Program-made: the position numbers and the translations under genes
Shown here: piece after piece, positions 39,787 to 63,996 of the stretch
How the letters are laid out: every line of letters starts with the position of its first letter
Numbering within the stretch: the first letter of the stretch is position 1
The notes under the pieces: model-generated
What the model saw: the letters and a program-made list of their open reading frames with translations, nothing else
The model's database searches: none
Told to the model about the DNA's origin: nothing
IMG/VR virus record: IMGVR_UViG_3300044712_002668
Location: 186,001-250,000 of that record
Length of the DNA: 64,000 nucleotides
Strand: one strand, 5' to 3'

Positions 39787-39810
39787 AAACGCATAAATTC
39801 ATATTACTAC

Positions 39811-44864: not shown

Positions 44865-44979
44865 GGGTATTTTTAAGAGATTTGGGAATTTTGGGAGAGC
44901 GCGGGAGGAGAGGGGGATCCTCTTTGCGCTCTTCCTTAATATGGATGGAGAATTTGAGTGCATACGTGAGGAGGCGCAT

Positions 44980-45554: not shown

Positions 45555-45566
45555 GATGGAGACGGC

Positions 45567-49506: not shown

Positions 49507-49519
49507 ATTATGTTTGGGG

Positions 49520-49720
49520 GTGATTATTCTTGATAAAGAGGATTGGATGACCCCTGAGAAAAATGGTTATGGATTTGGAATTGGTTATGGGAGTGGAGAA
49601 GGGGCAGAGATTAATGGCACTGGAAATGGTTATGGTAATGGAGCTGGTGGAGGGCGGGGGTTTGGAGTTGGAAGCGGTGCTTGTTTAGGAGCAGGAAACG
49701 GCGAAGGATTTAGCAGATGA
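49520..49720 (+). CDS. Gly-rich paralog 1 (VIILDKEDW leader; start uncertain)
   Basis: family leader plus G-x repeats. Confidence 0.6.
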   Translation: MIILDKEDWMTPEKNGYGFGIGYGSGEGAEINGTGNGYGNGAGGGRGFGVGSGACLGAGNGEGFSR

Positions 49721-49926
49721 AAGTATTGATTCTGGATAAGAAGGATTGGATGACGCCTGAGGATAATGGTTTGGAAGGTGAGAGTCATAGAGATGGGAGT
49801 GGAAGGGGAGAGGGGGCAAGGTGGAGTGGCGATGGTTATGGTTATGGAGCTGGTAATGGTGCGGTGCTTGGAACTGGCTATGGTGCTTGTTTAGGAGCTG
49901 GCAACGGCCAAGGATTTAGCAGATGA
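49717..49926 (+). CDS. Gly-rich paralog 2
   Basis: MKVLILDKKDW leader. Confidence 0.75.
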   Translation: MKVLILDKKDWMTPEDNGLEGESHRDGSGRGEGARWSGDGYGYGAGNGAVLGTGYGACLGAGNGQGFSR

Positions 49927-50156
49927 AAGTCTTGATTCTTGATAAAGAGGATTGGCAGATACGGGAGCAGCAAGACGGCAGCAGTACTACCTCAGATTAC
50001 GGTTTTGGAAACGGGATTGGAACTGGATTTGGGTATGGCGCAGGACGTAGCAACGGCATTGGAACCGGAGATGGGGAAGGTGAGGCGGGAGGCTTCCTTG
50101 TTGGTTGGGGTGCTGGAGGCGGCACGCACAATGGCTGTGGGGATTTTGAGGAATGA
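49923..50156 (+). CDS. Gly-rich paralog 3
   Basis: MKVLILDKEDW leader. Confidence 0.75.
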   Translation: MKVLILDKEDWQIREQQDGSSTTSDYGFGNGIGTGFGYGAGRSNGIGTGDGEGEAGGFLVGWGAGGGTHNGCGDFEE

Positions 50157-50407
50157 AAGTATTGATTCTTGATAAAGAGGATTGGCAGATAAAAGAGAAT
50201 GGTAACGGTGATAACTGGTTTTATAGTAATGGCGATGGTATGGGTTACGATGGTGGTTGTACTCAAGGTAGGGGCAGAGGAACTGGTAAGGGTTGTGGCC
50301 AGGGCGATGGTGATGGCAGCCGTGGTGATTATGGTTTGGTTATTGGTAGTGGAGATGGTAGTGGTCTGGGTAGTGGAGATGGTAGTGGTCTGGGCCGAGG
50401 AAGATAA
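50153..50407 (+). CDS. Gly-rich paralog 4
   Basis: MKVLILDKEDW leader. Confidence 0.75.
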   Translation: MKVLILDKEDWQIKENGNGDNWFYSNGDGMGYDGGCTQGRGRGTGKGCGQGDGDGSRGDYGLVIGSGDGSGLGSGDGSGLGRGR

Positions 50408-50607
50408 TGATAATCAAAGATGTAAAAGATTTATTGGCCAAGGTTGATAAGATGGGGGAATCGTATATGGAGAGCAATGTTTTATTGGCAACGATAGCGG
50501 TATGCATTGATAATCAGAATGATATTTTGAAGAGACAGAATGAATTGTTGGGGAGGCACAATGAATTGTTATCGGAACAGAATATGATATTGAGGAGTCA
50601 CAAGTGA
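50407..50607 (+). CDS. hypothetical coiled-coil protein
   Basis: TAATG overlap. Confidence 0.5.
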   Translation: MIIKDVKDLLAKVDKMGESYMESNVLLATIAVCIDNQNDILKRQNELLGRHNELLSEQNMILRSHK

Positions 50608-50781
50608 CATGGAAACGGAAGATAAGGAGAGGCTTGAGAGATTATTGGAGGTGGTAGCTGAATATTACAGGCAACATAAGAAGGGGATTGAGAGGTGTGA
50701 GGAATTTGTGAAGAAGGGTTATATGAAGAAGGTTGGCGGGGCATATGTATCGAGAGCAACGGGAAGGGTGATGTTGCCGGT

Positions 50782-50988
50782 ATGACAACGGATAATGATG
50801 GTGAGCCGATTCCAACCAGTTATGAGGGTATTTATTGGAAGGAGAGATGGAGCAGGATGAAGAAATTATATGATTATGAACATAAGGAATATGCAGACAA
50901 ATTTCAAACATTTACTGTTCTGGTTTTCGGTGGTGTTATTTTTGTGATTCTGGTTATGCTGACTATTCCTTTGCTGCGAGGATGCTAA
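50782..50988 (+). CDS. small membrane protein
   Basis: C-terminal TM segment. Confidence 0.5.
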   Translation: MTTDNDGEPIPTSYEGIYWKERWSRMKKLYDYEHKEYADKFQTFTVLVFGGVIFVILVMLTIPLLRGC

Positions 50989-50992
50989 GAAC

Positions 50993-51709
50993 ATGCAAAA
51001 CATCAACATCAGTAATTTTACTATTATCGGTGGCAGAATTATTGATGGTAAACCTTTTACTGAGCAACAAGCGCAGTCGAAAGTTCCGGTTCAGGAGATT
51101 GGGCCGCGTCAAGTTTGTTTCATATGTGTTCATAAAGATGGGACGCCATATACTATAGAGGCCAGAACGGCGGCTGAAGCAGAGCAAGAGTTTTTTAAGA
51201 CTTATAAGAGTTATCCTAGTTGTATTAATGATGGCATTGGTAATGGTTTTTTTGTCAATGAGGGTACCAGCAAGTATCAGAAAGAACCTGAGGCTCCGAA
51301 GCATAGCGAATTGAAGAATGAAATAGTTTATACCAATGGTATTAGATTGAAAAATCATCCTGGTTTGTATTATCGGTTAGTAACTAATCATAACAATACA
51401 AAAATAGTAAAGCCAAATATTAGATATCTAGTTTATTATATTCTATCCACTGTTGGTGAAAATCGTTTGAGTGAGACACAGATACATGAAATAGCAGAAA
51501 AGATCTGGCCGGGTATTATAGATTATTATAGTTGTATACTGATACAAAAATATCTTTGTTGTAGCAATTATGTATCTTATAATTATAAACTTGGTGGATA
51601 TTTTCTACTGCCATCCGGTTATAGTTATCTAGCTTTTCATAATAGAAAAAAGAATAACCGTAGAGTTGCTCGTAATTTGGCTAAGCAAAACACCAAGGGT
51701 TATAATTAA
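50993..51709 (+). CDS. hypothetical protein
   Basis: 238-aa ORF. Confidence 0.6.
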   Translation: MQNINISNFTIIGGRIIDGKPFTEQQAQSKVPVQEIGPRQVCFICVHKDGTPYTIEARTAAEAEQEFFKTYKSYPSCINDGIGNGFFVNEGTSKYQKEPEAPKHSELKNEIVYTNGIRLKNHPGLYYRLVTNHNNTKIVKPNIRYLVYYILSTVGENRLSETQIHEIAEKIWPGIIDYYSCILIQKYLCCSNYVSYNYKLGGYFLLPSGYSYLAFHNRKKNNRRVARNLAKQNTKGYN

Positions 51710-52104
51710 TGAATAATTATAAAAGATATTTTATTTTCCTTCTATGTTTTATGGTCTCATCCATAGCACTGGGTGATACTAATAAAGATCCTTTGTTTCG
51801 TTTGACTGTGACAATTCATTTCAAAGGAAAGCGAATAAGCGATTATACAGTAGATCTTGAAAAAGATAAGATTACACCAGTAGTGCTTCCCACATCATCG
51901 TGGGATTGTGCAACAATGGCTACCAGAATTTCTGGAGAGTACAGAACAAAAAGTATCAACTGTACTATTTGGGATCAGAAAGAGAAAAAACCAATAGTAC
52001 AAGTTGCAAGCAGAGCTTTTCGTAAAGAGAGGGTTTGTAATTCTGGTAACCTGATATTGCATGAGGGTGATAGGCAAATAATTTTGGTTTTAGAATGTAA
52101 ATGA
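51709..52104 (+). CDS. exported hypothetical protein
   Basis: signal-peptide-like N-terminus, four Cys after the signal. Confidence 0.55.
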   Translation: MNNYKRYFIFLLCFMVSSIALGDTNKDPLFRLTVTIHFKGKRISDYTVDLEKDKITPVVLPTSSWDCATMATRISGEYRTKSINCTIWDQKEKKPIVQVASRAFRKERVCNSGNLILHEGDRQIILVLECK

Positions 52105-52379
52105 TACACTATACCAGTATGACCAACACCACGAGCATCAAGGCTTTCCGCAAGAATTCCCGCCGCAACTTCCACGATGGGGATGGAGGCGAGGATCTTG
52201 TTATCAAGATGTATTGCAACCCTGACATTCGATGGCTGTGTCAGAGGATTGTCAATGAGAGCGGAGGAAAGATTGTTTTCATCGAGGATGATTACAGCCT
52301 GCCGAGTGGCAATATTGTTTTCGAGCTTATGAGCGGAAAGCGGATTGAGAAGCACTTCTACTTCCCGAATGGAAACTGA
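52101..52379 (+). CDS. hypothetical protein
   Basis: 92-aa ORF. Confidence 0.55.
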   Translation: MIHYTSMTNTTSIKAFRKNSRRNFHDGDGGEDLVIKMYCNPDIRWLCQRIVNESGGKIVFIEDDYSLPSGNIVFELMSGKRIEKHFYFPNGN

Positions 52380-52718
52380 ATGAAAAGAAACTGCAATATT
52401 TGCGGGGAAGAGTTTGATACACAATCTCCGGAGAAGCGAGCGGTTGGGGGATTGATAACAACCTGTCCTGATTGTTCTGAGGAACATACGGTGAAGTATG
52501 CCGGGGTACAATCTGCCGATGGAAAGCAAGCCCAGGCAACAATCCTGAAGTTCAATAACGAAGCAGATAAGAAAGCATATATAAGATTCTGGAAGAACAA
52601 TACAGGATGGAACAAAGGCAAATCCTGTCAGCTTGGAAATCATTTATCAACAACGCCGGGGATTTCTTTTGAAAGTGTTCAAACGTTCCATGCAACGAAT
52701 CACAAGGGCAAAGCATGA
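52380..52718 (+). CDS. zinc-ribbon hypothetical protein
   Basis: CNIC...CPDC. Confidence 0.65.
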   Translation: MKRNCNICGEEFDTQSPEKRAVGGLITTCPDCSEEHTVKYAGVQSADGKQAQATILKFNNEADKKAYIRFWKNNTGWNKGKSCQLGNHLSTTPGISFESVQTFHATNHKGKA

Positions 52719-53434
52719 ACATCCAAGAGATCAAGAGGGTTGTGAGTGAGAACTGTGAGCGGGTTGCGAAGCTCGGCAATTGGCCGAGGTATATTTCTCC
52801 CGATAGTTTGCTTTCAAGGATTCCCGATGGAGGTAAGGCTCCGGGTTTCGATGCAGGGATTGCTTGCTGTCTGGGATTGATTCCCGAGGATAAGCAGAAG
52901 TTGTCAGCAACGTTGCATGCGGCTTATACGCCAGCAGCGGTTGAGCAGGTTCGTAGGGAGATTGCGCTGGATGATGATAAGTTTTATGGGACGGAAACTT
53001 TCTATTGGTTGCTAGCCTGTTCATATTGTACTGAGGAACAGACTGAGGATCAGTTTTTCAATGCATGTCTTCTTGTAAGATTCATTCAGGCTCCTGAATC
53101 TATTGAGCGTGCTCGCAAGGAATATAAGAAGATGACGAGCAATTATAAGGTAGCTGACAATGTGGCTTGGGCCGTTGTTGATGGAGGGATTCAGGGAGCA
53201 TACTTGGACGGTTTGGATTTGGGGGTTCAATTCAATCATGGGATATTCTTTGTGAGTACTTATAAGGAGAGCTTGGGGATTCCGGAAAATTTCAAGTGGG
53301 TTGATCCTCCAACGAAGGAGCGGCCGATGAGCAATTCGGGACCGGTTTGGGGAAGCAAGCAGTATGTAAAGTGTGCAACTGCTGCTGAGCTGTTTGTGGT
53401 GTTGCTTTTGGCCAGGAGTTATCTTGGAGTATAA
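52715..53434 (+). CDS. hypothetical protein
   Basis: 239-aa ORF. Confidence 0.65.
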   Translation: MNIQEIKRVVSENCERVAKLGNWPRYISPDSLLSRIPDGGKAPGFDAGIACCLGLIPEDKQKLSATLHAAYTPAAVEQVRREIALDDDKFYGTETFYWLLACSYCTEEQTEDQFFNACLLVRFIQAPESIERARKEYKKMTSNYKVADNVAWAVVDGGIQGAYLDGLDLGVQFNHGIFFVSTYKESLGIPENFKWVDPPTKERPMSNSGPVWGSKQYVKCATAAELFVVLLLARSYLGV

Positions 53435-53507
53435 AAGGAATAGTTTGTAAATAGGCCAAATAATTCCTGGGTCCCACCCGTCAAGATATTAAATAGGAGG
53501 AAAGCAA

Positions 53508-53864
53508 ATGATCATAAAAGAGATACCCAAGGGTAAGATAACATTGATTAATGAGATATTATTGAAGTATGATCCGGCGGGGACAACGAGTCCTGATACG
53601 GATGAGTACTTGACGGAGGCAACGGATATTCTGTTGGAGATCCGCAAGGCAATCAAGGACCGAAAGATGTTTGGTTCTCATCAGGTTTCTTTGGAATCTG
53701 TCATTTGCAATATCGTATATGGCGAGTTGATAAAGAAATTTGCGATTGGAAGGAATGCGATTACTTATGATATTAGCATTCATGAGAAGTTGGTAGATAA
53801 GGGATCATGTGTTGAAGCTGGCAAAGAGATTTATGAATTGTTCAAAGGAGCGGAGACAACATGA
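53508..53864 (+). CDS. hypothetical protein
   Basis: AGGAGG RBS; LLKYDPAG...DEY motif. Confidence 0.6.
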   Translation: MIIKEIPKGKITLINEILLKYDPAGTTSPDTDEYLTEATDILLEIRKAIKDRKMFGSHQVSLESVICNIVYGELIKKFAIGRNAITYDISIHEKLVDKGSCVEAGKEIYELFKGAETT

Positions 53865-54133
53865 CAACCCCAACAGCAAAGAGTTTGGTTCAGATTATTC
53901 GTGAAGCTGTTGAGGCATTTGAGAATAAGTGGTTTATTGTAATCAGGAAGCGATGAAAAAGATAAAGGCTAAAGATTTGAGCATTGGAGATATTATAAAG
54001 CGCAACAAGAATAAGTGGAAGGTTGTTGGGATGGAGCCTATGATTGAAGGTGTTTGCCGATTCAAATTGGAGAACAAGAAAATTGTAGGTAACTGGAGTG
54101 TGATGAGCCATTCGGAAGTGGTGAGGCTCTAAA

Positions 54134-54514
54134 ATGTCAGATAAAGATGACGAGGTTTCTGTTACTGAATTCAAGAACAATGTAGATATGGTTATAAATG
54201 CTATTATGTCTAATGGATTGAAGCTTGATGCCTTTTTCGGTATCTTCAAAACCCGTCATGGTGAGAGTTATCTTCATAAGGTTTACGCTACGTCATATTT
54301 GATGGTAGCGAGTGCCTTTGCGGTGCAGCATTTGACGGTTCAGGATTTCTTGAAACTTGTAGTGAAGGCATGTAACATTCCTGAGGATGTGGTTTTGGAG
54401 TATGCAGCGGAGATAGTATTGAAGAGGGCTGAGGATATGATGCCTGACATTTGTGATAAGTGTGATAAGAAGGAAACCTGCTTGAAGCGATGTGATAAGA
54501 AACAGATGAATTGA
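54134..54514 (+). CDS. hypothetical protein
   Basis: C-terminal CDKC. Confidence 0.6.
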   Translation: MSDKDDEVSVTEFKNNVDMVINAIMSNGLKLDAFFGIFKTRHGESYLHKVYATSYLMVASAFAVQHLTVQDFLKLVVKACNIPEDVVLEYAAEIVLKRAEDMMPDICDKCDKKETCLKRCDKKQMN

Positions 54515-54537
54515 TGGCAATAATGAGATATTGAAGT

Positions 54538-54951
54538 ATGAACTTGAAGAAGATAGCAAAGGCTGCTGCGAAGCAAGCTGCGATTGAGACATATCGTAGT
54601 ATAATGAAGATGGCTGAGGATCGTATTCCTGAGGGGAACGTTGATACTTGGAACGTGGATAAAGGACCTGGTGGAAACGAGGCTTATTCTTTTTATAGAA
54701 GGGATGCTGGTGGTGGCAGGACATCTGATTGGTATAAAGACAAGGTACCTGCTGACAGGCAGGGAAGAGCGCAGCTTTTGAGCCGATGGGACAGTGCAGT
54801 ATATACTGATGATTCGCTTATCAGTGGGGGATATAAATTCCTGGGAACTGTACCAGGTGAGACAGGTTCTAAACTATGGTTACAGGATGGTGTGGCAGGG
54901 GTGAAGTTATTTATAACATCGCCTAGTTCCATGAGGCGGCCGAACTGGTAA
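54538..54951 (+). CDS. hypothetical protein sharing its N-terminus with 24922..25314
   Basis: MNLKKIAKAAAKQAAIETYRSIMKMAE. Confidence 0.65.
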   Translation: MNLKKIAKAAAKQAAIETYRSIMKMAEDRIPEGNVDTWNVDKGPGGNEAYSFYRRDAGGGRTSDWYKDKVPADRQGRAQLLSRWDSAVYTDDSLISGGYKFLGTVPGETGSKLWLQDGVAGVKLFITSPSSMRRPNW

Positions 54952-55071
54952 ACTTACAAAGAACCTTGATATGAAAATATCAAGGTTTTTTCATATAAGG
55001 AGGACGAACATGACAAATACAAATACCAAGTTTTTTGAAGATGAAGAGGCTCTGGATGATTGGGGTACCAA

Positions 55072-55326
55072 GTGAGGAATAAAGCAGAACGCCGCAGGTT
55101 TGACAATTTGTCAAAGGAGAAAGCAAAGAAAGTAATGAAGTTATGGGGATTGACGAAGATTGATCCGAAGAATATTGGAAGGAATGCGGCGGTACATTGT
55201 AGAAAGTGTGCATGTTCAATGTGTCAGGGAAGCAATCGTTCAACGAACTGTACTACAGAGCTTTCTATTCAGGAATTGAAGGCGAAGGAATCTGCGGAAA
55301 GCGAGTGGTACGATAGTGATGGTTGA
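55072..55326 (+). CDS. small basic Cys-containing protein
   Basis: RNKAERRR...HCRKCACSMC. Confidence 0.55.
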   Translation: MRNKAERRRFDNLSKEKAKKVMKLWGLTKIDPKNIGRNAAVHCRKCACSMCQGSNRSTNCTTELSIQELKAKESAESEWYDSDG

Positions 55327-55537
55327 AATAGAGATCGGTGGTCATCTCAAAACCATTGATACTAAACATGTCAGAGTGGTCATACCACTTATCAGACATC
55401 ACCGGAATATTTTTATAACGGAGGAGGGTATAGAGATAGAGGTGATGGACAAGGATGGGGAGGTAGCGGCATGTGGTAATGTAAATTACGATGAGGTTGT
55501 GCCGTTTTCGGAGGATGTGTTGGAAGATGACCTTTGA
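55316..55537 (+). CDS. hypothetical protein
   Basis: operonic packing. Confidence 0.5.
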   Translation: MMVEIEIGGHLKTIDTKHVRVVIPLIRHHRNIFITEEGIEIEVMDKDGEVAACGNVNYDEVVPFSEDVLEDDL

Positions 55538-55684
55538 TATGATTTGTCATTCGATAGCATTGAGTGCATTGACGGTGTGGATATTTTTTGAGAACAGGAA
55601 TCGTATAAATAAGCAGAGAGAGTTGGAGTTGAGGATCAAGAAACTGGAAGATGGTTCTTATGATTACTCTGAGCAAAGGTTCCC

Positions 55685-55954
55685 ATGAGTACCCTGAGCA
55701 GTAGAGGAGTTATCGTAAAGATTCTAAAGCACAACGGGGATATGAATCTTGGGGAGGAATATCCGATGATTGTACATGCCTTGATTCAATATACCAGTGG
55801 GTTCGGGACGGTATGTTGGAAGGCATGTTATAAGCCATTGGATGAGGTTCGGTTTTTGAAGGATGGGAACATTGATAGGAGAGTTCCTGTTGTGTATTTG
55901 TTTTTGAATGGGAAGGTTACGAAGGATGGGATTGAGTTCCTGGGAGCTAGCTGA
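55685..55954 (+). CDS. hypothetical protein
   Basis: operonic packing. Confidence 0.5.
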   Translation: MSTLSSRGVIVKILKHNGDMNLGEEYPMIVHALIQYTSGFGTVCWKACYKPLDEVRFLKDGNIDRRVPVVYLFLNGKVTKDGIEFLGAS

Positions 55955-56352
55955 TGAGAAGCAAAGCCGATATAGGCTTGGTTATCCAGCAGGAATTGTT
56001 TTATAAGCTGAGCAAGAATGCCAGGCAATATATCTTGGAGGTTCTTGGATGTTCCGATGATCCTTTTCCTGAGAATCCTGGCGAAGCCAGTTTGGATTTC
56101 CAACAAGTTGATAACGTATGGTTTTATTTGTTTATCAAGAAAGATTTCAGGGTAAAGATTGATGAGGAGGATATTGTCAGGGAGATATCATTGGAAGGAG
56201 TTATTGATGAGATGTTGGAGAAGGGCGTTGATGATTTCTATATTGTGATAGCATATCATAATTTGGATGAGCAGAGTTATAGTTTTGGAAGTGGTAAGGA
56301 CCCATACGGGTTGAAGATGGTGAAGAGTGTGAGGCTGTCCTATGGTACCTGA
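55954..56352 (+). CDS. hypothetical protein
   Basis: TGATG overlap. Confidence 0.55.
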   Translation: MRSKADIGLVIQQELFYKLSKNARQYILEVLGCSDDPFPENPGEASLDFQQVDNVWFYLFIKKDFRVKIDEEDIVREISLEGVIDEMLEKGVDDFYIVIAYHNLDEQSYSFGSGKDPYGLKMVKSVRLSYGT

Positions 56353-56647
56353 CAAGACTGACAATAGGATTATGACTACTGATGACGTGATTGATTCGAG
56401 CCGGATCGTGGTGGAAAAGGGGTGTCTGGCAAAGCGGATTGTCTTGAGGGATTTGGGTCATGAGTATGCGGTTCATACTGAGTACCTGCGTACTGTGGCT
56501 GGGGATGATGCTGTGAAGTGCAGGTTCCAGCATGAATCGTTTGAGAGTGGTGGTTACTTCCAGTATGGGGATGGTTGGGAGCTTACGAAGGAGAAGGCAT
56601 TGAAGCGGGCTACTGAGGCTTTCGAGGGACTGATGAGGATGCTATGA
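56342..56647 (+). CDS. hypothetical protein
   Basis: operonic packing. Confidence 0.55.
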   Translation: MVPDKTDNRIMTTDDVIDSSRIVVEKGCLAKRIVLRDLGHEYAVHTEYLRTVAGDDAVKCRFQHESFESGGYFQYGDGWELTKEKALKRATEAFEGLMRML

Positions 56648-56877: not shown

Positions 56878-56956
56878 TGTGCAGAGTTCAACCCATTGGG
56901 TTTCTCTCTGTGAAAGTACGAAAGTAGAAACCCAATGGGTTGGTACTGAGGACCGA

Positions 56957-57550
56957 ATGGAACTAACCAAAACCAAAGAATGGTTTGAGATACAAGACGA
57001 ATTGGGAGTTGATTTTGATTATACGAAACGTGGCGTTTATGAAAGAGAAAGACGTTGGGAAACCAAATTGATTCGTTTGAGTTTGACTGGATATGAGAAG
57101 CATGCGGTTTCCGGAGTTTCAAAACATTTATGTTCTTGTTGTAAGAATATAAATCCTGAGCTTACCAAGAGGGTGGTAAGGTATGTAAGGGATAACATTT
57201 GGGGAGCCAAGAGATACGATCATGACTGTGATAGTTGTGAATTTCTTGGTCAGTTCGGGGAGGTTGATTTGTGGTTCTGTCCAGGGGAACCAACGATTAT
57301 AATCCGGCGCAGTTCGGAAGTATCAGATTACAGTTCCGGTTTGGAATTTATTGATACGGCATTTCTGATAATGAATGAGAGGCATCCTCAAAGTAAGGAA
57401 TTCAGGATATCTGCAAATTGTTTGTTTCGTTCGGCGGCTAAGGCCGAATGTGTTATCAGAGCTATGCAGCTTGGAATTCTACCGTATAACTGGAATGTGT
57501 TGACATTGAAAGAATTGAAGAAGAAGGTAATGAGGATGTACAAGAGGTGA
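56957..57550 (+). CDS. hypothetical protein
   Basis: GAGG RBS; HDCDSC motif. Confidence 0.6.
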   Translation: MELTKTKEWFEIQDELGVDFDYTKRGVYERERRWETKLIRLSLTGYEKHAVSGVSKHLCSCCKNINPELTKRVVRYVRDNIWGAKRYDHDCDSCEFLGQFGEVDLWFCPGEPTIIIRRSSEVSDYSSGLEFIDTAFLIMNERHPQSKEFRISANCLFRSAAKAECVIRAMQLGILPYNWNVLTLKELKKKVMRMYKR

Positions 57551-57551
57551 T

Positions 57552-57791
57552 ATGAAGGTCTTAATTCTTAACAAGGAAGAATGGCTGGAACGGGAGGGGT
57601 ATAGCCATGGATTTGGGAGTGGTGATGCTCATGGGGAAGGGGATGGTAATGGTGAGGGCGGTGGTGGGGGATACGGCTACATCAATGATGGATCTGGCTG
57701 TTGTAAAAATACTGCTGGATGTGGTTATGCTTATGGACAGGGAAATGGCCATGGTGGTGGGTTTGGAAATCTGGGAGATCTAAGAAGATGA
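57552..57791 (+). CDS. Gly-rich paralog 5
   Basis: MKVLILNKEEW leader. Confidence 0.75.
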   Translation: MKVLILNKEEWLEREGYSHGFGSGDAHGEGDGNGEGGGGGYGYINDGSGCCKNTAGCGYAYGQGNGHGGGFGNLGDLRR

Positions 57792-58531
57792 GAACCGCAA
57801 GAGATAACAGTATTCTGGAAGTCAAGGGTAAGTCCTCGAAGAAGCCGAGGGGTGTTGTTGGAGTCAATCTGGGGGCTGATTACTGTGCAGAGCATGAGTG
57901 GGGAATCAAGAGGATTCGGGATAAGTTCGGGATGACCTCGGATGGGATTGGGATTGAGAACAAGAGGATTCGTTATGTATCCGAGGATTTGGTTTTCGTA
58001 ACTGATAAGTATACGGGTTTGTTTTGCGATCATCTTTATGAAAGAACTCCAACGCAGTATCTGGATAATTATCATGTATCCAGGCAGGGATTATGGACGG
58101 CATGGGATGAGAAGTCCTTTGCGGTTATAACGATGGATGGGACGCATCACGATGATTTGAGGACGATACATCAGGCGTTTTTGGATTTGGATATTGCGAT
58201 ATGGTTGGGAGGAGGCGGGGTGTTTCAGAATGCGGGTTTGTGTTTCGGTATCATATCAAAGTTGTCGAAGGACATTACTGATATGTGGGCCAAGCATGAT
58301 TTGGAAGCCAAGCAGTTGGATGAAGATGTAAAGAAGCTTGGGATTCTGGAGAGGCTTGCAGCGGCAGGGCTTGGGCCTTTCAAGGGATATTTCGCATGCA
58401 GTCCTAAGAGGATTGATGGAAAGATTATGTTCTGGTTGAATCCATTTGATCAACAGAATAATAATTATGGTTGGTATACGGTGAAGGATTTGGATGATTG
58501 GATTGCTGGCAAGGGTAAGGTGATCAAGTGA
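57788..58531 (+). CDS. hypothetical protein
   Basis: 247-aa ORF; AEHEWGI motif. Confidence 0.65.
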   Translation: MRTARDNSILEVKGKSSKKPRGVVGVNLGADYCAEHEWGIKRIRDKFGMTSDGIGIENKRIRYVSEDLVFVTDKYTGLFCDHLYERTPTQYLDNYHVSRQGLWTAWDEKSFAVITMDGTHHDDLRTIHQAFLDLDIAIWLGGGGVFQNAGLCFGIISKLSKDITDMWAKHDLEAKQLDEDVKKLGILERLAAAGLGPFKGYFACSPKRIDGKIMFWLNPFDQQNNNYGWYTVKDLDDWIAGKGKVIK

Positions 58532-58986
58532 AGCAATCAACCAGGAACAAGATTTATCGTTTCGTCAAGGATAAGGATGGTTTTACAAAGCACATTGAAA
58601 AACTTGATAAGTTGTATGAGGCATACAAGAAGTATTCTGGAAAATATGTTACATTTACTTTGCGTCATAAATGTGAGATTGGGGATATTTATGTTAGTTA
58701 TCCTGATGGTCAGGTTTATGATAAGATTTTGATTGATGACCATGAGAAATTTGATAAGTTTGTTCGTAAGTTTGAAGATGATATGAAGAAGTTGTTCAAG
58801 AGGATTTTGGATTATATCTGGAAGATCTCTTCTGATTTGCATAAGAGAAATGGTTTCAGTGATGTTTTCAAGAATAAGGTTCTTGGAGATAATAAGTATG
58901 ACGATAATGATTTGCCTGTTGTTTTTTCGGATTTCATTATTTATGCTGTGTTTGGCTTTGAGACATCTTTTGGTAGGGATGTTTGA
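58528..58986 (+). CDS. hypothetical protein
   Basis: GTGA overlap. Confidence 0.55.
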   Translation: MKQSTRNKIYRFVKDKDGFTKHIEKLDKLYEAYKKYSGKYVTFTLRHKCEIGDIYVSYPDGQVYDKILIDDHEKFDKFVRKFEDDMKKLFKRILDYIWKISSDLHKRNGFSDVFKNKVLGDNKYDDNDLPVVFSDFIIYAVFGFETSFGRDV

Positions 58987-59295
58987 AAGAGGTCCAACCT
59001 CTTTGTTGGCATGGAAGTTGCTCTTAATGTCTTAATTAATAGTTAATATATATATACTTAATTGGCGCAGCTTTTTCGATTTATTTATTGATTACGAAAA
59101 GATCAGAATCCGGGAATTGTTTAAGGGATTTGGTTTTATGAGAAAAGATGGCCCGTGGGAAGAAGCCAATGGGGTTGGGAAGCGTTTTCAATAAAAGGAT
59201 GGGGAGCAGGTGGTCCTGGTAGGAAATACGTTTGTAGGGCATTCTAAAAGTTCTCTTCCGAGAAATAAAAAGAAAGTCTAAAAAGAAAGAAAAAG

Positions 59296-59568
59296 ATGAT
59301 GGCGAATATAGTAAAGATTAAAGATGATGGTGAGAATAATTTTGACATTATCCGAATAGGAAACATCAAGCTAGGGGAAGGGTATCGACCTTACAGATGG
59401 TCAGTAAGGAAAGTAGATAACGAATTTATAGTTGCAAAAGATTTCTTCGAAATAACGGTAAGTGATAATGTTATTCAGGCAGAGCTTGTTGAGGTACTGA
59501 CAATCAAATCATTCGAGAAAGAAGAAAAAGCAATTCATATGTTCGACCAGAAGGAGTGGTACCTGTGA
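59296..59568 (+). CDS. hypothetical protein
   Basis: 90-aa ORF. Confidence 0.5.
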   Translation: MMANIVKIKDDGENNFDIIRIGNIKLGEGYRPYRWSVRKVDNEFIVAKDFFEITVSDNVIQAELVEVLTIKSFEKEEKAIHMFDQKEWYL

Positions 59569-59801
59569 AAATCGTCATCGAATTCGAGAGTAATAACGAT
59601 GCCTTTCAGGACGATATCTTCTGCGGAGGATATCCGAAGTTCTTCTGGGAGGTATTCAGGATCTTGCAGCATTGTTCAAATGTTATCGGTGATCATCGTA
59701 ACAAGTTCGGGCTACAACTTGATACTGTAAATAAGGGTTTGGAATATGGTTTGAAGGATGAGAATGGAAATACCATTGGAAAGTTGAAGATTGAAGTATG
59801 A
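59556..59801 (+). CDS. hypothetical protein
   Basis: operonic packing. Confidence 0.55.
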   Translation: MVPVKIVIEFESNNDAFQDDIFCGGYPKFFWEVFRILQHCSNVIGDHRNKFGLQLDTVNKGLEYGLKDENGNTIGKLKIEV

Positions 59802-60172
59802 AGATAAACATATCACATGAAGAGTTTGTTGTTTTTGTGGAAAGTGATTATGGTGATGAGGTTGAAATGCCGGATGAGTTGGCGGAAAAGGTCCGCCGTG
59901 CTGAAACTGAGTTCTTCAATGTTCAAAAAGAATTGAAACATTTCTTTACGGAACGTAGGTTTGGAGAGGTAGTGAGGGGATTGAAGTCAGCGAACAAGGA
60001 ATTGGAAGCGAGGATAGAGGGAGGTGAGGTAATATTCATTACCAAGTTGAAGAATGGTAGGGAAGTTAGAAAGGTATTGAAGCAGCGGGATGTGGTGAAT
60101 TATGAAACGATAAAGAGGGCATGGCGGGATTTCTGTAATTACAATAGGATGTTGAGGTTGATGAATGGATAA
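59798..60172 (+). CDS. hypothetical protein
   Basis: ATGA overlap. Confidence 0.55.
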   Translation: MKINISHEEFVVFVESDYGDEVEMPDELAEKVRRAETEFFNVQKELKHFFTERRFGEVVRGLKSANKELEARIEGGEVIFITKLKNGREVRKVLKQRDVVNYETIKRAWRDFCNYNRMLRLMNG

Positions 60173-60758
60173 CACAGAAACAGAAAGAATTATTGAAAAT
60201 AGGAAGATGTGGGAAGAGTATATGAAGACGCATCATCTTATTAGAGATGATGAACTTCAAAAGCTCTTTAATGATGAAAGTTTCAAGTTTGAACTTGAGA
60301 GTGGTTTCAAGGTAGCAAAGATTGTACATAATGAACTTGAACTAAAGAAACTTATTTTGAGATTCGGGAACTGGGATAAATCAACCGTTCCTAGTTCTTT
60401 CAATAACCTTGATGTTCTTGAATACTTCGAAGGCGTTATTAAAGGAAAGACTAAGAATTACAAAGATGAAGATGGTTATGATGTAGAAGAAAATCCTGAT
60501 TTGACTAAGTTCGGCCCATGCAAGGTAGCTTATTTCAATCAGTTCAGTCGGCCTCCATGGGCCTGGGACGAGGCGGAGTTTATTGGATTGAGGGAGGAGG
60601 ATATAGAGATAGATGAGGGGTTTGAGATTGAGTATCCGGCGGTGGTCAGGATCTGGATGGAGGACGGTTGGGATCGCGGTGGAAATTTCAAGTTCCGGAT
60701 TGTGACGTGTTTATCATTGAATAGGTTGCTGTATGGGGACGTGATAGTATCGATATGA
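60165..60758 (+). CDS. hypothetical protein
   Basis: 197-aa ORF. Confidence 0.6.
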   Translation: MDNTETERIIENRKMWEEYMKTHHLIRDDELQKLFNDESFKFELESGFKVAKIVHNELELKKLILRFGNWDKSTVPSSFNNLDVLEYFEGVIKGKTKNYKDEDGYDVEENPDLTKFGPCKVAYFNQFSRPPWAWDEAEFIGLREEDIEIDEGFEIEYPAVVRIWMEDGWDRGGNFKFRIVTCLSLNRLLYGDVIVSI

Positions 60759-61084
60759 AAAAGAAAACGGAGGATGAGGATTTTGTTCCGTATCATTACA
60801 GGAATCCGTTTTCGGGATACAGGGGAATTAGTTTGGAGTATATAGCATTCAAGATGTCACCATTTGATATTAGAACGTTGATTGAAGATATGGTATCACA
60901 CATTGATGCCTTGAACAAGAAGCAGCAGGAGACTGACGAGCAGCTTTTTGGGATGGTTAATGGGAGTATGAAGAGTGGCAATACGTTGTTGGCGGCAACG
61001 ATGGCGGGGGTATTGATAGCCACTCCTGAGAAAGAGCGGACGCCAGAGCTTCTTGATTTGGTAGATAAGATAGCCAAGATATGA
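60755..61084 (+). CDS. hypothetical protein
   Basis: ATGA overlap. Confidence 0.55.
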   Translation: MKKKTEDEDFVPYHYRNPFSGYRGISLEYIAFKMSPFDIRTLIEDMVSHIDALNKKQQETDEQLFGMVNGSMKSGNTLLAATMAGVLIATPEKERTPELLDLVDKIAKI

Positions 61085-61250
61085 ATTCTCTGGAGGATCC
61101 ATATTTCTGGACATCGATCATGGGGGTGGGAGCGGCTTGGTATTGGATGATGGTAGCAAGACATTGGCGTGATAAGTGTGATAAGAATTGATTTTTTTTA
61201 TAAACGTCCGATCCACAAACAACAACCACAGAACAAGAAAGATAAATCAA

Positions 61251-61604
61251 ATGCCCAACGCCACCAGCAAGAAGACTTCTTCCGCCGCCACCGCTTCCAT
61301 TTTCGACGATTACATTGGACAGTACTGCATTGTTCGCAGCCGTGACCAGGGTGTGATGGCAGGATATGTTGAGGGAGTTGTTGGACAGGCAGTGAAGCTG
61401 CGTGAGGCTCGGCAGCTTTATGCGTGGTCTTCCAAGTTCGTTCTGGTTGAGCTTGCGGCTCAGGGTCCTCGTCGGGCCAATGAGCAGCGTTATTCTATTC
61501 CTTCTGCCAAGCCGGTGATGATGCTGGAGGCATGTGGGATCATTCCTTGTACTGATGAGGCTGCGAAGGCGATTCGTGAGATTCCGGCCGAGGCTCACGA
61601 GTAA
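61251..61604 (+). CDS. DUF6948-like small beta-barrel protein
   Basis: IGQYCIVRSRDQGVMAGYV...VKLREARQLYAW...LAAQG...EACGIIPCTDEA matches my recollection of this phage family. Confidence 0.65.
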   Translation: MPNATSKKTSSAATASIFDDYIGQYCIVRSRDQGVMAGYVEGVVGQAVKLREARQLYAWSSKFVLVELAAQGPRRANEQRYSIPSAKPVMMLEACGIIPCTDEAAKAIREIPAEAHE

Positions 61605-61661
61605 GGGTTGATATTGAGGAGGTCGGGGGAAACCCCGGCCTCTTCGGGGGAATGGAGGAAG

Positions 61662-61907
61662 ATGAAGGTAGCTATTCTAGATAAAGAAGAATGGGTAGTG
61701 AGTGAATCAAAGTTAGGATACAATAAAGGGGCTGGGTGTAATTTATCACTAACTGGTAAGTGTTATGGATGTGGCCAGGGTGCTGGTCAAGGTAATGGTG
61801 ATGGGTTTGGTCATGACCAAACTGATACTCAGGCTTATTGGTGTGGTTGTGGATATGAAATAACTGGTAAAGGAAATGGGGATGGAAATGGAAGCGGGAT
61901 TGATTGA
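61662..61907 (+). CDS. Gly-rich paralog 6
   Basis: MKVAILDKEEW leader; GGAGG RBS. Confidence 0.75.
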   Translation: MKVAILDKEEWVVSESKLGYNKGAGCNLSLTGKCYGCGQGAGQGNGDGFGHDQTDTQAYWCGCGYEITGKGNGDGNGSGID

Positions 61908-62152
61908 TGAAAGTATTGATTCTTGATAAGAATAGGTGGCAAGAAAATGAGAATGGGTGGGGAGAGGGTAGTGGTAATTTAATTTCATGGGGCAGGGGTC
62001 TTGGAGGTGGTGCTGAACAATGGTTGCCTATGCGGGGTGCAGGTTTTGCTGGGGGTGCGGGTTTTAATGCTCCTCAAAATTGTGTTCAGAATGATGGGGC
62101 CGGGGGTAGTTATGGAGCTGGCAGTGGGGATGGTCGTGGACTTGAAGAATGA
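61907..62152 (+). CDS. Gly-rich paralog 7
   Basis: MKVLILDKNRW leader. Confidence 0.75.
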   Translation: MKVLILDKNRWQENENGWGEGSGNLISWGRGLGGGAEQWLPMRGAGFAGGAGFNAPQNCVQNDGAGGSYGAGSGDGRGLEE

Positions 62153-62367
62153 AAGTAATAATCCTGAATAAAGAGCATTGGCAGATGCCAGAGAATAAAA
62201 GTTATTTTCAAAGCGGTCACGGGACTGGAACTGGAATTGGTTTGGGTTTGGGATATGGATCTGGTGGTTTTGGAGTTGATAATGAGATGGGTAGTGGTAG
62301 TGGTCTTGCTGATGGTGGTGGTAATGGGATGGGTGTTGGAAATGGCGGCGAGATACATGAAGAATGA
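62149..62367 (+). CDS. Gly-rich paralog 8
   Basis: MKVIILNKEHW leader. Confidence 0.75.
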   Translation: MKVIILNKEHWQMPENKSYFQSGHGTGTGIGLGLGYGSGGFGVDNEMGSGSGLADGGGNGMGVGNGGEIHEE

Positions 62368-62603
62368 AAGTATTGATTCTTAAAAAAGATGATTGGATGA
62401 TACCGGAATCTTATTGTCATTATACAAAGGGAAATGGTGATACTGAGACTGGTGGCTGGGGAGATGGTTCTGGTAATGGGATCGGAGATTTGGGAGGAAT
62501 AAATCGTCATGGTTTTGTAAATGGTGAAGGTCAGGCGAGTGGTATGGCAAATGGAGATGGCCAAGGTTGGGGCGATGGATGTTCAGAACTCCTAATGATA
62601 TGA
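62364..62603 (+). CDS. Gly-rich paralog 9
   Basis: MKVLILKKDDW leader. Confidence 0.75.
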   Translation: MKVLILKKDDWMIPESYCHYTKGNGDTETGGWGDGSGNGIGDLGGINRHGFVNGEGQASGMANGDGQGWGDGCSELLMI

Positions 62604-62791
62604 AAATAAAAAACATTCTAGATTTTCTCGTAACAACAATAATAAAATTGATTGGATTTGAGGACATCAGGGATGCCGAATTGTTTTTTGGTAAACCGAT
62701 ATCAAATTGTTATAATGATGATTTGTCATTGACTGAAAATAAAAATATAATCGTAGAATTTATTAAGAAGAAAAACTTTGGTAGAAACTAA
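62600..62791 (+). CDS. hypothetical protein interrupting the array
   Basis: 63-aa ORF with ATGA overlap. Confidence 0.5.
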   Translation: MKIKNILDFLVTTIIKLIGFEDIRDAELFFGKPISNCYNDDLSLTENKNIIVEFIKKKNFGRN

Positions 62792-62792
62792 T

Positions 62793-63038
62793 ATGAAAGT
62801 TATTATCCTGAATAAAGAGGATTGGCAGCTACCAGAAGAGAGAGGGCGTGCGCAAGGTTCTGGATTTGGAAGTGGTATAGATGGTTTTTATATTGCCAAT
62901 GGTTCCGGTGTATCTTCCGAATTTATAACTGGCAGGGGTCAAGGTTGCGGCAATCACCATTTCAATAATGGTAGTCATGGAATGGGATTTGGAAATGCTA
63001 GGGGACATGGTGAAGGTAACGGACTAGGTTGGGAATAA
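62793..63038 (+). CDS. Gly-rich paralog 10
   Basis: MKVIILNKEDW leader. Confidence 0.75.
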   Translation: MKVIILNKEDWQLPEERGRAQGSGFGSGIDGFYIANGSGVSSEFITGRGQGCGNHHFNNGSHGMGFGNARGHGEGNGLGWE

Positions 63039-63274
63039 TGAAAGTTATTATCCTGAATAAAGAGGATTGGATGATAGAAGATAGTGGTTTTGGTGGTGGT
63101 CACGGTGAAGGCTGGCCAAATGTAACTGGTAAAGGTTATGGCGATTATAAAACAGCACATAATTATGGCCGTGGAGCCGCCGATGGAATTGCCGATAATA
63201 TTGATACTCTAAATTATGGGGATGGAAATGCTATTGGTTGTGGTGATGGAGATGGTCAAGGTTTTGGAAATTGA
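63038..63274 (+). CDS. Gly-rich paralog 11
   Basis: MKVIILNKEDW leader. Confidence 0.75.
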   Translation: MKVIILNKEDWMIEDSGFGGGHGEGWPNVTGKGYGDYKTAHNYGRGAADGIADNIDTLNYGDGNAIGCGDGDGQGFGN

Positions 63275-63276
63275 TT

Positions 63277-63516
63277 ATGAAAGTAATGATTCTTAAGAAA
63301 GAAGATTGGATGATAAAGGAAGATAGAGGCTTTGGTGAAGGTGAAGGTTGTGGCGGGGTTCCTAGTTATCATCTTGCTTCTGTTGGATATGGAGAAAGTT
63401 CTTCTTTTCGGAAGGGGGATGGAAACGGTCTGGGGGAAGGTCAAGATGCATGCAACGGACGCGGCTTCTGTCACTATGGTTGTGGAGATGGCTCCGGTTG
63501 TGGATATGGAAAATGA
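63277..63516 (+). CDS. Gly-rich paralog 12
   Basis: MKVMILKKEDW leader. Confidence 0.75.
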   Translation: MKVMILKKEDWMIKEDRGFGEGEGCGGVPSYHLASVGYGESSSFRKGDGNGLGEGQDACNGRGFCHYGCGDGSGCGYGK

Positions 63517-63749
63517 AAGTAATTATTTTAGATAAAGAAGATTGGTTAAAGAAAGAATGTAGTTTTGGATGTGGTTATTGCGCTCAATATGGTATAGCCG
63601 AAGGTAGTGGTGTTTATTCTGGTAATTGCCTTGATTCTGGTATTACTCAAGATGGATCTGGAGAAGCTGATGGTTCCAGCTGTGGTGAAATGTTTTCTTG
63701 TTTAGGAAGAGGGTATTGTACAGGATCTGGTGGTGTATATTTGAGGTGA
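63513..63749 (+). CDS. Gly-rich paralog 13
   Basis: MKVIILDKEDW leader. Confidence 0.75.
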   Translation: MKVIILDKEDWLKKECSFGCGYCAQYGIAEGSGVYSGNCLDSGITQDGSGEADGSSCGEMFSCLGRGYCTGSGGVYLR

Positions 63750-63762
63750 TTGGTATTGAATA

Positions 63763-63996
63763 ATGAAAGTGCTAATCCTAAACAAAGAACAATGGTTATG
63801 GGAACAGCTTGGAGCTGGTTCAGGTAGTGGTGCTAATTATGATAGATATGCAACTGAAGGATATGGCTCTACATGTGATATAACTTATGGTTTTGGTTAT
63901 GGAAGAGCTGATGGTAGTGGAGATTGTAAATATGGAACAAGTACTGGGAGCGGGTATATTTTAGGTTCTGGTGATGGTCGTGGTAGCGGTGAATGA
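63763..63996 (+). CDS. Gly-rich paralog 14
   Basis: MKVLILNKEQW leader. Confidence 0.75.
   Translation: MKVLILNKEQWLWEQLGAGSGSGANYDRYATEGYGSTCDITYGFGYGRADGSGDCKYGTSTGSGYILGSGDGRGSGE

Follow-up and report, generated by a model that had tools for sequence, protein, structure and literature searches.

What are the many short, glycine-rich open reading frames that recur in one region of a huge soil phage genome, all beginning with nearly the same peptide and then diverging freely, and to what might that peptide be directed? The window analysed here is a 64,000-nucleotide stretch (positions 186,001 to 250,000) of the 335,988-bp virus record IMGVR_UViG_3300044712_002668, referred to below as G000, which derives from a rhizosphere metagenome and belongs to a phage of at least 455 kb. 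An earlier note, made from the sequence alone, had described fourteen such paralogs of 66-84 aa with a constant 11-residue leader, and had read them as a family laid out like RiPP precursors or folding as polyglycine-II bundles that docks through the leader onto a common partner such as a maturase, secretion factor or defence protein. The observation in that note was confirmed and could be extended, whereas its interpretation was only partly supported.

The microprotein arrays and their flanking genes

All fourteen open reading frames were identified on the + strand and all were recovered with a profile HMM of the family. The features of the region are as follows, in window coordinates with the stop codon included.

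49514..49720 (+), copy 1 (HMM E 1e-12); a TTG start at 49514 gives MGVIILDKEDWMTPE, the alternative GTG start at 49520 is the one given in the earlier note, and the leader reads MGVIILDKEDW or M-IILDKEDW
49717..49926 (+), copy 2, 69 aa, MKVLILDKKDWMTPE, with an ATGA overlap with copy 1
49923..50156 (+), copy 3, 77 aa
50153..50407 (+), copy 4, 84 aa
56879..57550 (+), a 223-aa protein of unknown function abutting copy 5, with a partial homolog (44% over 61 aa) about 0.6 kb downstream of two adjacent family copies in a related phage contig (L005/L055)
57552..57791 (+), copy 5, 79 aa, a singleton
61251..61604 (+), DUF6948 protein, 117 aa from the Met at 61251 (the ORF opens at 61188), with a predicted Sm/LSm-like fold, 58 nt upstream of the main array; the candidate common partner
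61662..61907 (+), copy 6, 81 aa, MKVAILDKEEWVVSE
61907..62152 (+), copy 7, 81 aa
62149..62367 (+), copy 8, 72 aa
62364..62603 (+), copy 9, 79 aa
62688..62751 (+), two sigma-70-like promoter matches (TTGGTA-17-TATAAT with TG; TTGTCA-17-TATAAT, 11 of 12) in the only sizeable gap of the array, upstream of copy 10
62793..63038 (+), copy 10, 81 aa
63038..63274 (+), copy 11, 78 aa
63277..63516 (+), copy 12, 79 aa
63513..63749 (+), copy 13, 78 aa
63763..63996 (+), copy 14, 77 aa

The sizes agree with those given previously, and most neighbours overlap by 1-4 nt (ATGA or TAATG) or are 2-13 nt apart, making translational coupling plausible from the sequence. The promoters are consensus matches only; the overall counts of such matches in the region were not above the shuffled expectation. 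The array, which the earlier note had suggested might run past the window edge, does so: the next copy starts 4 nt beyond it, at G000 250004, and is followed by a PcfJ-like gene (G000 250213-251079), ArdA (251508-252071) and an ArdC-like gene (256128-257126). In total, the family HMM identified 30 members in the record, all on the + strand between 235.4 and 316.6 kb. This recurrence is not due to chance, as an exhaustive HMMER scan returned only 21 hits and a (G-X)n detection criterion returned zero hits in 386 kb of control DNA (230 kb of this genome and 156 kb of unrelated loci). A search for expression data found none, and only two DNA runs were found to hold the sequence.

A constrained leader and an unconstrained body

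The conserved head encompasses 15 residues rather than 11, MKV[LI]IL[DNK]K[EK][DEH]W-x-[I]-P-E, with Glu15 present in 24 of 26 copies and preceded mostly by [ILVM]-P. Synonymous codons vary freely at the conserved positions: Val3 uses GTA, GTC, GTT and GTG, Leu6 uses CTG, CTT, CTA and TTA, and Glu15 is encoded by GAA in 12 copies and by GAG in 12. In the leader, pS is 0.67-0.71 and pN is 0.17-0.23, indicating purifying selection on the peptide, whereas in codons 16-30 pN is about equal to pS at about 0.6. A dN/dS near 1 in the leader, which had been named beforehand as an outcome that would refute the family, was therefore not observed. The leader is almost unchanged between phages whose other shared proteins are mostly 27-45% identical, reading MKVLILDI[HK]DWLLPE in L005/L055, KV[IL]ILD.xDWNI[PV]E in L057, MGVLILDIADWLTEE in L061 and MEPKVVILNCEDYYSIED in L060 (designations of the related phages compared here).

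The body is a strict period-2 (G-X)n chain and is mostly acidic. Its composition is G 31.6%, Y 6.1, S 6.1, D 6.1, N 5.9 and C 4.5%, and Gly recurs at +2 in 64% of cases and at +1 in 9%, although Cys is nearly absent from the bodies in the relatives. In AlphaFold2 models the head scored pLDDT 72-86 and the whole body below 45, consistent with a disordered chain without a predicted fold.

Linkage to DUF6948 and a PcfJ-like gene

The DUF6948 gene (Pfam PF22253, E 5e-21) is present as a single copy in the genome. The protein was predicted to fold confidently (AF2 pLDDT 80.8) and its best structural matches in Foldseek were Sm/LSm proteins, with a TM by target of up to 0.78 and a probability of 1.0. 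However, this Sm-like assignment rests on a predicted model and on Foldseek E-values of only about 3e-3, and the sequence identity to Sm proteins is only 8-17%. A single co-fold of DUF6948, PcfJ and a microprotein returned scores of 0.13, 0.69 and 0.00, which give no direct evidence of binding.

DUF6948, which the earlier note had proposed for co-folding with the leader, was found to be the one gene genomically linked to this family across many phages. In four huge-phage lineages the arrays sit beside a conserved DUF6948 gene and a PcfJ-like gene, the order being DUF6948, then 10 copies, then PcfJ in G000; 4 copies, then DUF6948, then PcfJ in L055; about 35 copies with PcfJ and DUF6948 within 10 kb in L057; and 2 copies, PcfJ, DUF6948, then at least 7 copies in L061. 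DUF6948 and PcfJ are the best-conserved proteins of the locus among these phages, at 65-68% and 53-61% identity. In 10 of 10 further DUF6948-bearing lineages, namely Pectobacterium phage Koroua and its kin, Iodobacter PhiPLPE, Ralstonia NK-7, Vibrio IKEMa6-1, Chlorobiaceae CV-1-33, four uncultured phages and a P22-like contig, a (G-X)n ORF abuts or overlaps the DUF6948 gene, and it was this detection rule that gave no hits in the control DNA. However, about two thirds of the copies in G000 lie far from the single DUF6948 gene, so that the linkage is with the main array and not with every copy. Moreover, most small-phage (G-X)n proteins lack the KVLILD..DW leader, which could serve a function added later, such as one related to PcfJ, packaging or turnover, rather than DUF6948 binding.

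With regard to the wider context, ArdA, the ArdC-like gene and PcfJ lie within 7 kb downstream of the main array, Ku, a ligase and a Metallophos gene lie near other copies, L057 carries Tad2-like and NAMPT/NUDIX genes nearby, and in small phages the pair sits with Erf, RecE, SSB and exonuclease genes.

Alternative readings and a proposed docking role

The two specific readings in the earlier note were not supported. A RiPP precursor role, in which the leader would recruit a radical SAM/SPASM enzyme, an ATP-grasp ligase or a peptidase to modify Gly/Cys/Tyr-rich cores, is suggested by the constant leader and variable core in many copies, as in prochlorosin-type systems where many precursors, scattered and clustered in one genome, are served by one enzyme. 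The genome also encodes at least two R2K-clade ATP-grasp genes and one divergent rSAM/SPASM-like enzyme (CX7CX2C; SPASM 26.9 bits; G000 320349-321395) about 4 kb from one array, which a Radical_SAM scan of the genome, itself negative, had missed. However, this is the only rSAM/SPASM-like gene found and its family has about 3000 homologs at E below 1e-5 on many contigs, far commoner than the Gly-X family, which occurs in a handful of lineages. No YcaO was found in the genome, no maturase abuts any array, and no dedicated recognition element, protease or exporter is linked. The leader is only 15 aa, the cores are 50-70 residues of low complexity with no conserved modifiable position, and DUF6948 resembles Sm proteins and not the PqqD-like recognition element. 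Phages of about 40 kb carry the DUF6948 and (G-X)n pair with no RiPP-type enzyme among their named products, as in the 41-kb phage Koroua, although many of its 65 annotated features are hypothetical. This reading is considered improbable. Miniature polyglycine-II domains docking onto a fibre or other structure are considered very unlikely: the proteins are Gly-rich with variable segments between Gly positions, resembling the glycine-rich motifs and hypervariable segments of the phage adhesin gp38, but the gp38 sandwich has more than 50% Gly with runs such as GGGGGGGG (PMC6851490), whereas here Gly is 32% and strictly alternating, with GG only 9%. Furthermore, with three residues per PGII turn, side chains at every second residue would point to all three faces (an inference from geometry), no fold is predicted by AF2 and the genes are not in the tail module or a tail-fibre context. 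That the frames are not genes but by-products of G-rich repetitive DNA with a DNA- or RNA-level role is equally unlikely. All three sense frames of such repeats are open, gene callers disagree on the frame and the coding strand has a strong G excess, but the leader shows abundant synonymous change with a conserved peptide, start codons, lengths and stop-start overlaps are kept in about 30 copies and across distant phages, and only short, low-copy tandem repeats (period 12-25, fewer than 4 copies) were seen in the window copies.

Two further possibilities were given somewhat more weight, though both remain unlikely. The proteins could be packaged cargo, the head being a capsid-targeting propeptide removed by a prohead protease after Glu15 (hydrophobic-x-Glu) and the bodies being injected with the DNA as a cocktail of counter-defence factors, as with the T4 internal proteins IPI, IPII and IPIII, which likewise share only a short N-terminal peptide that ends hydrophobic-x-Glu and diverge freely in their bodies, and which have a counter-defence role (PMC3012670, PMC5694885). 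T4 capsid-targeting sequences are 10-20-residue N-terminal propeptides, the T4, phiKZ and SPN3US prohead proteases all cleave after Glu in an X-x-E motif, and the SPN3US paralogs gp53 and gp54 share identical first 15 residues but diverge elsewhere (PMC5694885); the frequency of Glu15 and the neighbouring anti-restriction genes are consistent with this. However, a search of the genome for Peptidase_S77 gave no match (nor did it in the control genomes), no protease was recognised among the head-module proteins, the major head protein (346 aa) aligns to its PHROG from residue 12 and so has no long propeptide, and no structural protein shares the leader. The genes lie in the small-gene block and not the structural block, there are 30 copies rather than about 3, the bodies are disordered, acidic Gly-X repeats rather than folded or basic proteins, the family is linked to a predicted Sm-fold gene, and the small-phage homologs lack the leader and sit in early recombination operons. 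Alternatively, the hydrophobic head and Gly-aromatic body could drive cross-beta (silk-like) or condensate formation, for example a selective phase around phage nucleic acid with DUF6948 as nucleator or chaperone, a reading compatible with the docking model below but placing the function in the material state. The strict period-2 Gly pattern is that of beta-sheet silk, such as the GAGAGS/GAGAGY of Bombyx-type fibroin, the copy in Ralstonia phage NK-7 is annotated 'fibroin heavy chain-like', GYG and GFG motifs are abundant, the body is predicted to be disordered, and Sm cores with Gly-rich repeats exist in Acinetobacter Hfq (PMC11617691). Unlike in silk, X is mostly Asp, Tyr, Asn or Ser rather than Ala and the chain is acidic, 50-90 residues long and cytoplasmic; the high net negative charge of many copies disfavours aggregation, and this reading does not explain why 30 different sequences are kept.

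The preferred reading, which is held tentatively (probability of roughly 0.45), is that these genes are the amplified, diversified half of a two-gene phage module that has not been described. One gene would encode a small protein of predicted Sm fold (DUF6948) and the adjacent gene or genes an intrinsically disordered, usually acidic chain of alternating Gly-X residues, where X is mostly Tyr, Asp, Ser, Asn, Phe or His. In this view, small phages carry one such chain, whereas in this phage and in at least three related huge-phage lineages the chain gene has multiplied to 10-40 tandem, translationally coupled copies that all keep the 15-residue peptide, and a conserved PcfJ-like gene has joined the locus. 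The coding status, the purifying selection on the leader, the period-2 disordered body, the paralog number and the conserved gene linkage are established by the analysis, while physical docking, for which there is no direct evidence of binding, the time of expression and the biological role are inferred. The idea in the earlier note of a common partner reached through the leader remains the best available reading. The constant head (a hydrophobic beta-strand VLIL, then D-x-x-D-W, then x-x-P-E) would act as a docking peptide tethering each variable disordered chain to one phage-encoded partner, DUF6948 being the first candidate and the PcfJ-like protein the second, and the assembly would then carry a mixed brush of Gly-X tails. 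This would resemble Sm or Hfq cores carrying Gly-rich, low-complexity tails, as in eukaryotic Sm proteins and the GGFGGQ repeats of Acinetobacter Hfq (PMC11617691), but with the Gly-rich part split into a separate polypeptide (or dozens of them) that is acidic and alternates strictly as G-X. The module would be expressed with the small-gene block, in an early region that also holds anti-restriction and DNA-repair genes, and probably acts in host takeover, counter-defence or nucleic-acid handling.

Genome setting and sequence properties of the family

The 335,988-bp virus record that contains the window at bases 186,001-250,000 (record G000) has a GC content of 37.9%, and the same DNA forms the first 336 kb of a 454,833-bp JGI metagenome contig, derived from a rhizosphere metagenome. 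This contig continues with phage-type genes, including a CCA-adding enzyme, a ribosomal L7/L12 homolog and an R2K ATP-grasp. Therefore, although IMG/VR labels the record a 'provirus' with 78% CheckV completeness, its boundary at 335,988 looks like a trimming artefact, and the phage is taken to be at least 455 kb. A major head protein, portal, large terminase, tail sheath and baseplate wedge proteins are encoded in the first 185 kb of the record. Comparison with 50,697 deposited phage genomes, by DNA and by tblastn with two window proteins as queries, returned no match. Features of the wider genome that were recorded during the analysis are as follows.

window 967-29020, nearly all on the - strand: a dense set of 34 tRNA genes identified by ARAGORN, 31 of which pass the Rfam gathering score, covering most amino acids; two of the ARAGORN calls have odd anticodon loops
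window 39769-40611: a phage-encoded J-domain (DnaJ) protein (E 3.7e-9); a Cpn10 homolog lies at about 310 kb of G000
window 40000-46000: a GC-rich island (0.49-0.56, against 0.38 for the genome) at the point where GC skew changes sign and gene orientation switches, holding ORFs with no family match, including a 297-aa Ala-rich protein with a Lys/Ala-rich tail (43314-44207)
G000 320349-321395 (L054:14180-15226 in the locus as extracted): a divergent radical SAM/SPASM-like protein of 348 aa
G000 324062-324841 and the JGI contig at about 342.7-343.5 kb (L051:18496-19311 in the locus as extracted): two R2K-clade ATP-grasp genes

All fourteen microprotein ORFs described in the earlier note are present at the places it gave, and its observation is therefore confirmed. 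The first copy uses a TTG or GTG start, and neighbouring copies mostly overlap by 4 nt (ATGA) or 1 nt, or lie 2-13 nt apart. The array runs on past the window, the next copy beginning 4 nt beyond its end. A profile HMM search of the record identified 30 members, all on the + strand between 235.4 and 316.6 kb, in groups of 4, 1, 10, 1, 1, 2, 4 and 7.

The conserved head comprises 15 residues, M-K-V-[LI]-I-L-[DNK]-K-[EK]-[DEH]-W-x-[I]-[P]-E, in which conserved positions use several synonymous codons (four for Val3, four for Leu6, and GAA to GAG at 12:12 for Glu15). Nei-Gojobori proportions calculated over all pairs gave a pS of 0.67-0.71 and a pN of 0.17-0.23 in the leader, whereas in the next 15 codons pN is about equal to pS at about 0.6. 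The peptide is what is conserved, not the DNA, and a dN/dS near 1 in the leader, which the note had named beforehand as grounds for refutation, was not found. The two public runs that hold the sequence carry identical contigs and so offered no strain variation for an ortholog-level test of selection.

After Glu15 the sequence is 32% Gly. A Gly is followed by Gly at +2 in 64% of cases, at +3 in 11% and at +1 in only 9%, which makes the body a strict (G-X)n chain where X is mainly Tyr, Ser, Asp, Asn, Ala or Cys. Most copies are acidic, with a pI of 4-5. AlphaFold2 prediction using an alignment of 26 paralogs yielded pLDDT values of 86 and 72 for the first two blocks of ten residues and below 45 for the rest, with a pTM of 0.21, and the ESM Atlas model was equally poor (pLDDT 0.34). 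No significant hit for the microproteins was obtained in Pfam, PHROGs, PADLOC or PDB sequences.

Relatives of the family and the genes linked to it

An exhaustive HMMER scan of 1.84 billion representative proteins returned 21 hits, of which 18 are this phage's own and three (P0009, P0019 and P0021) come from three other metagenomic lineages. A search for related loci in viral and metagenome contigs using the family alignment matched only unrelated MKVLILNK peptides, degenerate DNA patterns for the leader in viral, metagenome and genome collections gave single chance matches only, such as short-chain dehydrogenases, and a search for loci related to DUF6948 in viral contigs found nothing. However, walking the contigs of the three outside hits, and those carrying homologs of the neighbouring DUF6948 gene, showed that the family is heavily amplified elsewhere too.

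L005/L055, an NCBI MAG contig: at least 20 copies with the leader MKVLILDI[HK]DWLLPE and pure (G-X)n bodies
L057, a 74-kb JGI phage contig: about 35 copies within 10 kb
L061, an ENA contig: at least 9 copies in 3.7 kb
L009, a 1.5-kb ENA contig: 5 copies
L010/L011, another JGI lineage: 4 divergent copies beside Metallophos, DNA ligase and Ku genes

Proteins shared between these phages and the window's phage are mostly 27-45% identical (a helicase, Ku, a PhoH-like protein and a few others reach 46-71%), yet the leader is almost unchanged.

The genome's only DUF6948 gene lies directly upstream of the main array, and a PcfJ-like gene lies directly downstream of it. Genes found next to family copies in this genome include the following.

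window 56879-57550: a 223-aa Cys-rich protein of unknown function abutting the singleton copy 5, with a partial homolog near family copies in L005/L055; a possible further associate of the family
window 61251-61604: the DUF6948 gene
G000 250213-257126, just past the window end: an anti-restriction cluster directly after the main array, consisting of the PcfJ-like gene, ArdA (E 1.5e-22) and an ArdC-like gene (ArdcN plus a zincin-like peptidase domain); the ArdC-like gene is also next to family copies in L005

The trio of family copies, DUF6948 and PcfJ recurs in other lineages, in the order four copies, DUF6948, PcfJ in L055; copies, PcfJ, copies, DUF6948 in L057; and copies, PcfJ, DUF6948, copies in L061. 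DUF6948 (65-68% identity) and PcfJ (53-61%) are among the best-conserved proteins shared by these phages.

In order to assess whether DUF6948 is linked to Gly-X ORFs in general, tblastn searches with DUF6948 proteins were carried out and identified 17 deposited phage records in about nine lineages. In every lineage inspected, and in a P22-like metagenomic contig, a (G-X)n ORF abuts or overlaps the DUF6948 gene. It lies downstream in Pectobacterium phage Koroua, Iodobacter PhiPLPE, Ralstonia NK-7 (annotated 'fibroin heavy chain-like protein'), Vibrio IKEMa6-1, Chlorobiaceae CV-1-33, MW202898 and the P22-like contig, and upstream in MW202478. In two gut phages it is a short Gly-X stretch at the head of a larger protein; in one of these, MT835900, the run is only 12 residues, below the automatic threshold, and was seen by eye. 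The same detection rule found nothing in 230 kb of this genome outside the family region and nothing in 156 kb of unrelated loci. The P22-like copy begins MEPKVVILNCEDYYSIED, a recognisable leader, whereas most small-phage copies have only a short unrelated head. It is concluded that DUF6948 plus a Gly-X protein is an old two-gene module, of which the huge phages amplified the Gly-X half and fixed a leader on it.

An apparent fusion of the two genes was examined as possible 'Rosetta stone' evidence and rejected. Gene callers translate (G-X)n genes in the wrong frame (L060:506-770; L068:1459-1665 against the annotated CDS 1505-2077 of MW202478, UOF77468.1), producing '(Ala-Met/Ala-Leu)n' proteins. 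The annotated fusion in MW202478 is such a frame artefact, (AM)n joined to DUF6948, the real Gly-X gene being a separate upstream ORF. The weak phrog_18306 hits of the microproteins (E 0.15-1) are therefore not evidence of a fusion.

The DUF6948 protein matches Pfam PF22253 at 75 bits against a curated cut-off of 27. Its AlphaFold2 model has a pLDDT of 80.8 and a pTM of 0.71, and was compared with the Sm topology of an N-terminal helix and a strongly bent five-stranded sheet. The best Foldseek matches in the PDB are all LSm or archaeal Sm proteins, with TM by target of 0.6-0.78, a probability of 1.0 and E about 3e-3, and the best matches in AlphaFold DB are DUF6948 proteins followed by Sm-domain proteins. 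The Sm-like assignment is reasonable but not proven, and ring assembly and RNA binding would be inferences from the predicted fold alone. Sm cores carrying Gly-rich repeats are known in Acinetobacter Hfq (PMC11617691). A three-chain co-fold of DUF6948, PcfJ and a microprotein yielded scores of 0.13, 0.69 and 0.00, and was counted neither for nor against docking.

Alternative readings of the leader and body

The earlier note had proposed a RiPP precursor layout, polyglycine-II bundles and a common partner reached through the leader; only the last of these is retained, now with a concrete candidate, so that its interpretation is supported in part. For the RiPP reading, modifying enzymes or recognition elements (rSAM, YcaO, LanM, ATP-grasp or RRE) linked to the precursors were considered, but no enzyme abuts any array, no YcaO was found in a scan of the genome, and DUF6948 is Sm-like rather than PqqD-like. 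A genome scan for Radical_SAM (PF04055) was also negative; however, precomputed Pfam hits revealed the divergent rSAM/SPASM-like protein, which has a CX7CX2C motif in place of CX3CX2C and had been missed by the scan, so negative family scans of this genome should be read with care. This gene lies 4 kb from one array, but its family has about 3000 homologs (E below 1e-5, around 50% identity) on many contigs of up to 459 kb, far more than the handful of lineages that carry the Gly-X family, and it is not a dedicated partner. In addition, phage Koroua (41 kb, 65 annotated features) carries the module with no RiPP-type enzyme among its named products. Polyglycine-II bundles, as in the gp38 sandwich or snow-flea antifreeze protein, would require Gly at every third residue or in consecutive runs, at above about 45%, to allow close helix packing. 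The gp38 sandwich is more than 50% Gly, with 37 Gly in 73 residues and runs such as GGGGGGGG (PMC6851490), whereas the bodies here are 32% Gly with a period of two, which, as inferred from geometry, would put side chains on all three faces of a helix with three residues per turn. The predictions also show no compact fold, although this evidence is weak because polyglycine-II folds are hard to predict. The RiPP and polyglycine-II interpretations are therefore not supported.

A further alternative is suggested by the resemblance of the head to the capsid-targeting sequences of T4, which are 10-20-residue N-terminal propeptides cut after Glu and shared by otherwise diverse counter-defence internal proteins (PMC3012670, PMC5694885). 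The conserved head ends in [ILVM/T]-[P]-E, as expected of a prohead-protease site (hydrophobic/small-x-Glu), with Glu15 present in 24 of 26 copies, but this is a motif match only. Against this reading, no gp21/gp175-type prohead protease was recognised, either in a genome search with PF03420, for which the controls gave no signal either, or among the head-module ORFs; the major head protein lacks a long propeptide, no structural protein shares the leader, the bodies are acidic, and the small-phage homologs lie in early recombination operons with exonuclease VIII, Erf and SSB. The leader also appears to fit an N-terminal ClpX degron motif, Met-basic-phi-phi-phi-X5-phi, and to resemble a DnaK-binding motif, neither of which is used as evidence here, while the conserved positions of the double-glycine bacteriocin leader do not appear to line up with it.

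Genomic context and possible function

Around the arrays lie ArdA, an ArdC-like gene, PcfJ, Ku, a DNA ligase, a Metallophos gene and FtsK. In L057, NAMPT, two NUDIX genes, a radical SAM gene, Tad2-like, PTH2 and PhoH-like genes (L057:12358-17641) lie a few kb from the array of about 35 copies, and several of these belong to gene families known from counter-defence. Two good sigma-70-like promoter matches sit in the only gap of the main array. Taken together, this suggests early expression and a role in takeover, counter-defence or DNA/RNA handling. However, this is association and not proof: the gene linkage is read directly from the contigs, whereas docking through the leader, the time of expression and the biological role are inferred.

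The family and the DUF6948 plus Gly-X module match no catalogued family in the libraries searched, and a full-text literature search for DUF6948 returned no paper. A more far-reaching reading, which is not excluded but is considered unlikely on present evidence, is that of a widespread but unannotated phage module in which an Sm-fold protein works with separate, genetically encoded disordered Gly-X chains. In huge phages this would have evolved into a 'one dock, many tails' system, with dozens of interchangeable low-complexity chains loaded through a common 15-residue peptide. Such an assembly could act as a nucleic-acid mimic, as alternating Asp/Tyr on a Gly backbone could imitate phosphate and base, or as a condensate-forming counter-defence or RNA/ssDNA-handling device.

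Most huge-phage genes have no known function, and here one family alone accounts for about 30 genes of one phage and about 35 genes within 10 kb of another. The family is largely invisible to protein databases, being of low complexity and sometimes called in the wrong frame and reported as (Ala-Met)n artefacts, which is a concrete annotation problem worth fixing. It also leads to a two-gene module present in cultured phages of Pectobacterium, such as Koroua and Ymer, and of Ralstonia, Iodobacter and Vibrio, which places its function within reach of ordinary phage genetics. If the leader is a docking peptide for an Sm-like hub, this would be a new way for a virus to diversify a disordered interaction surface.
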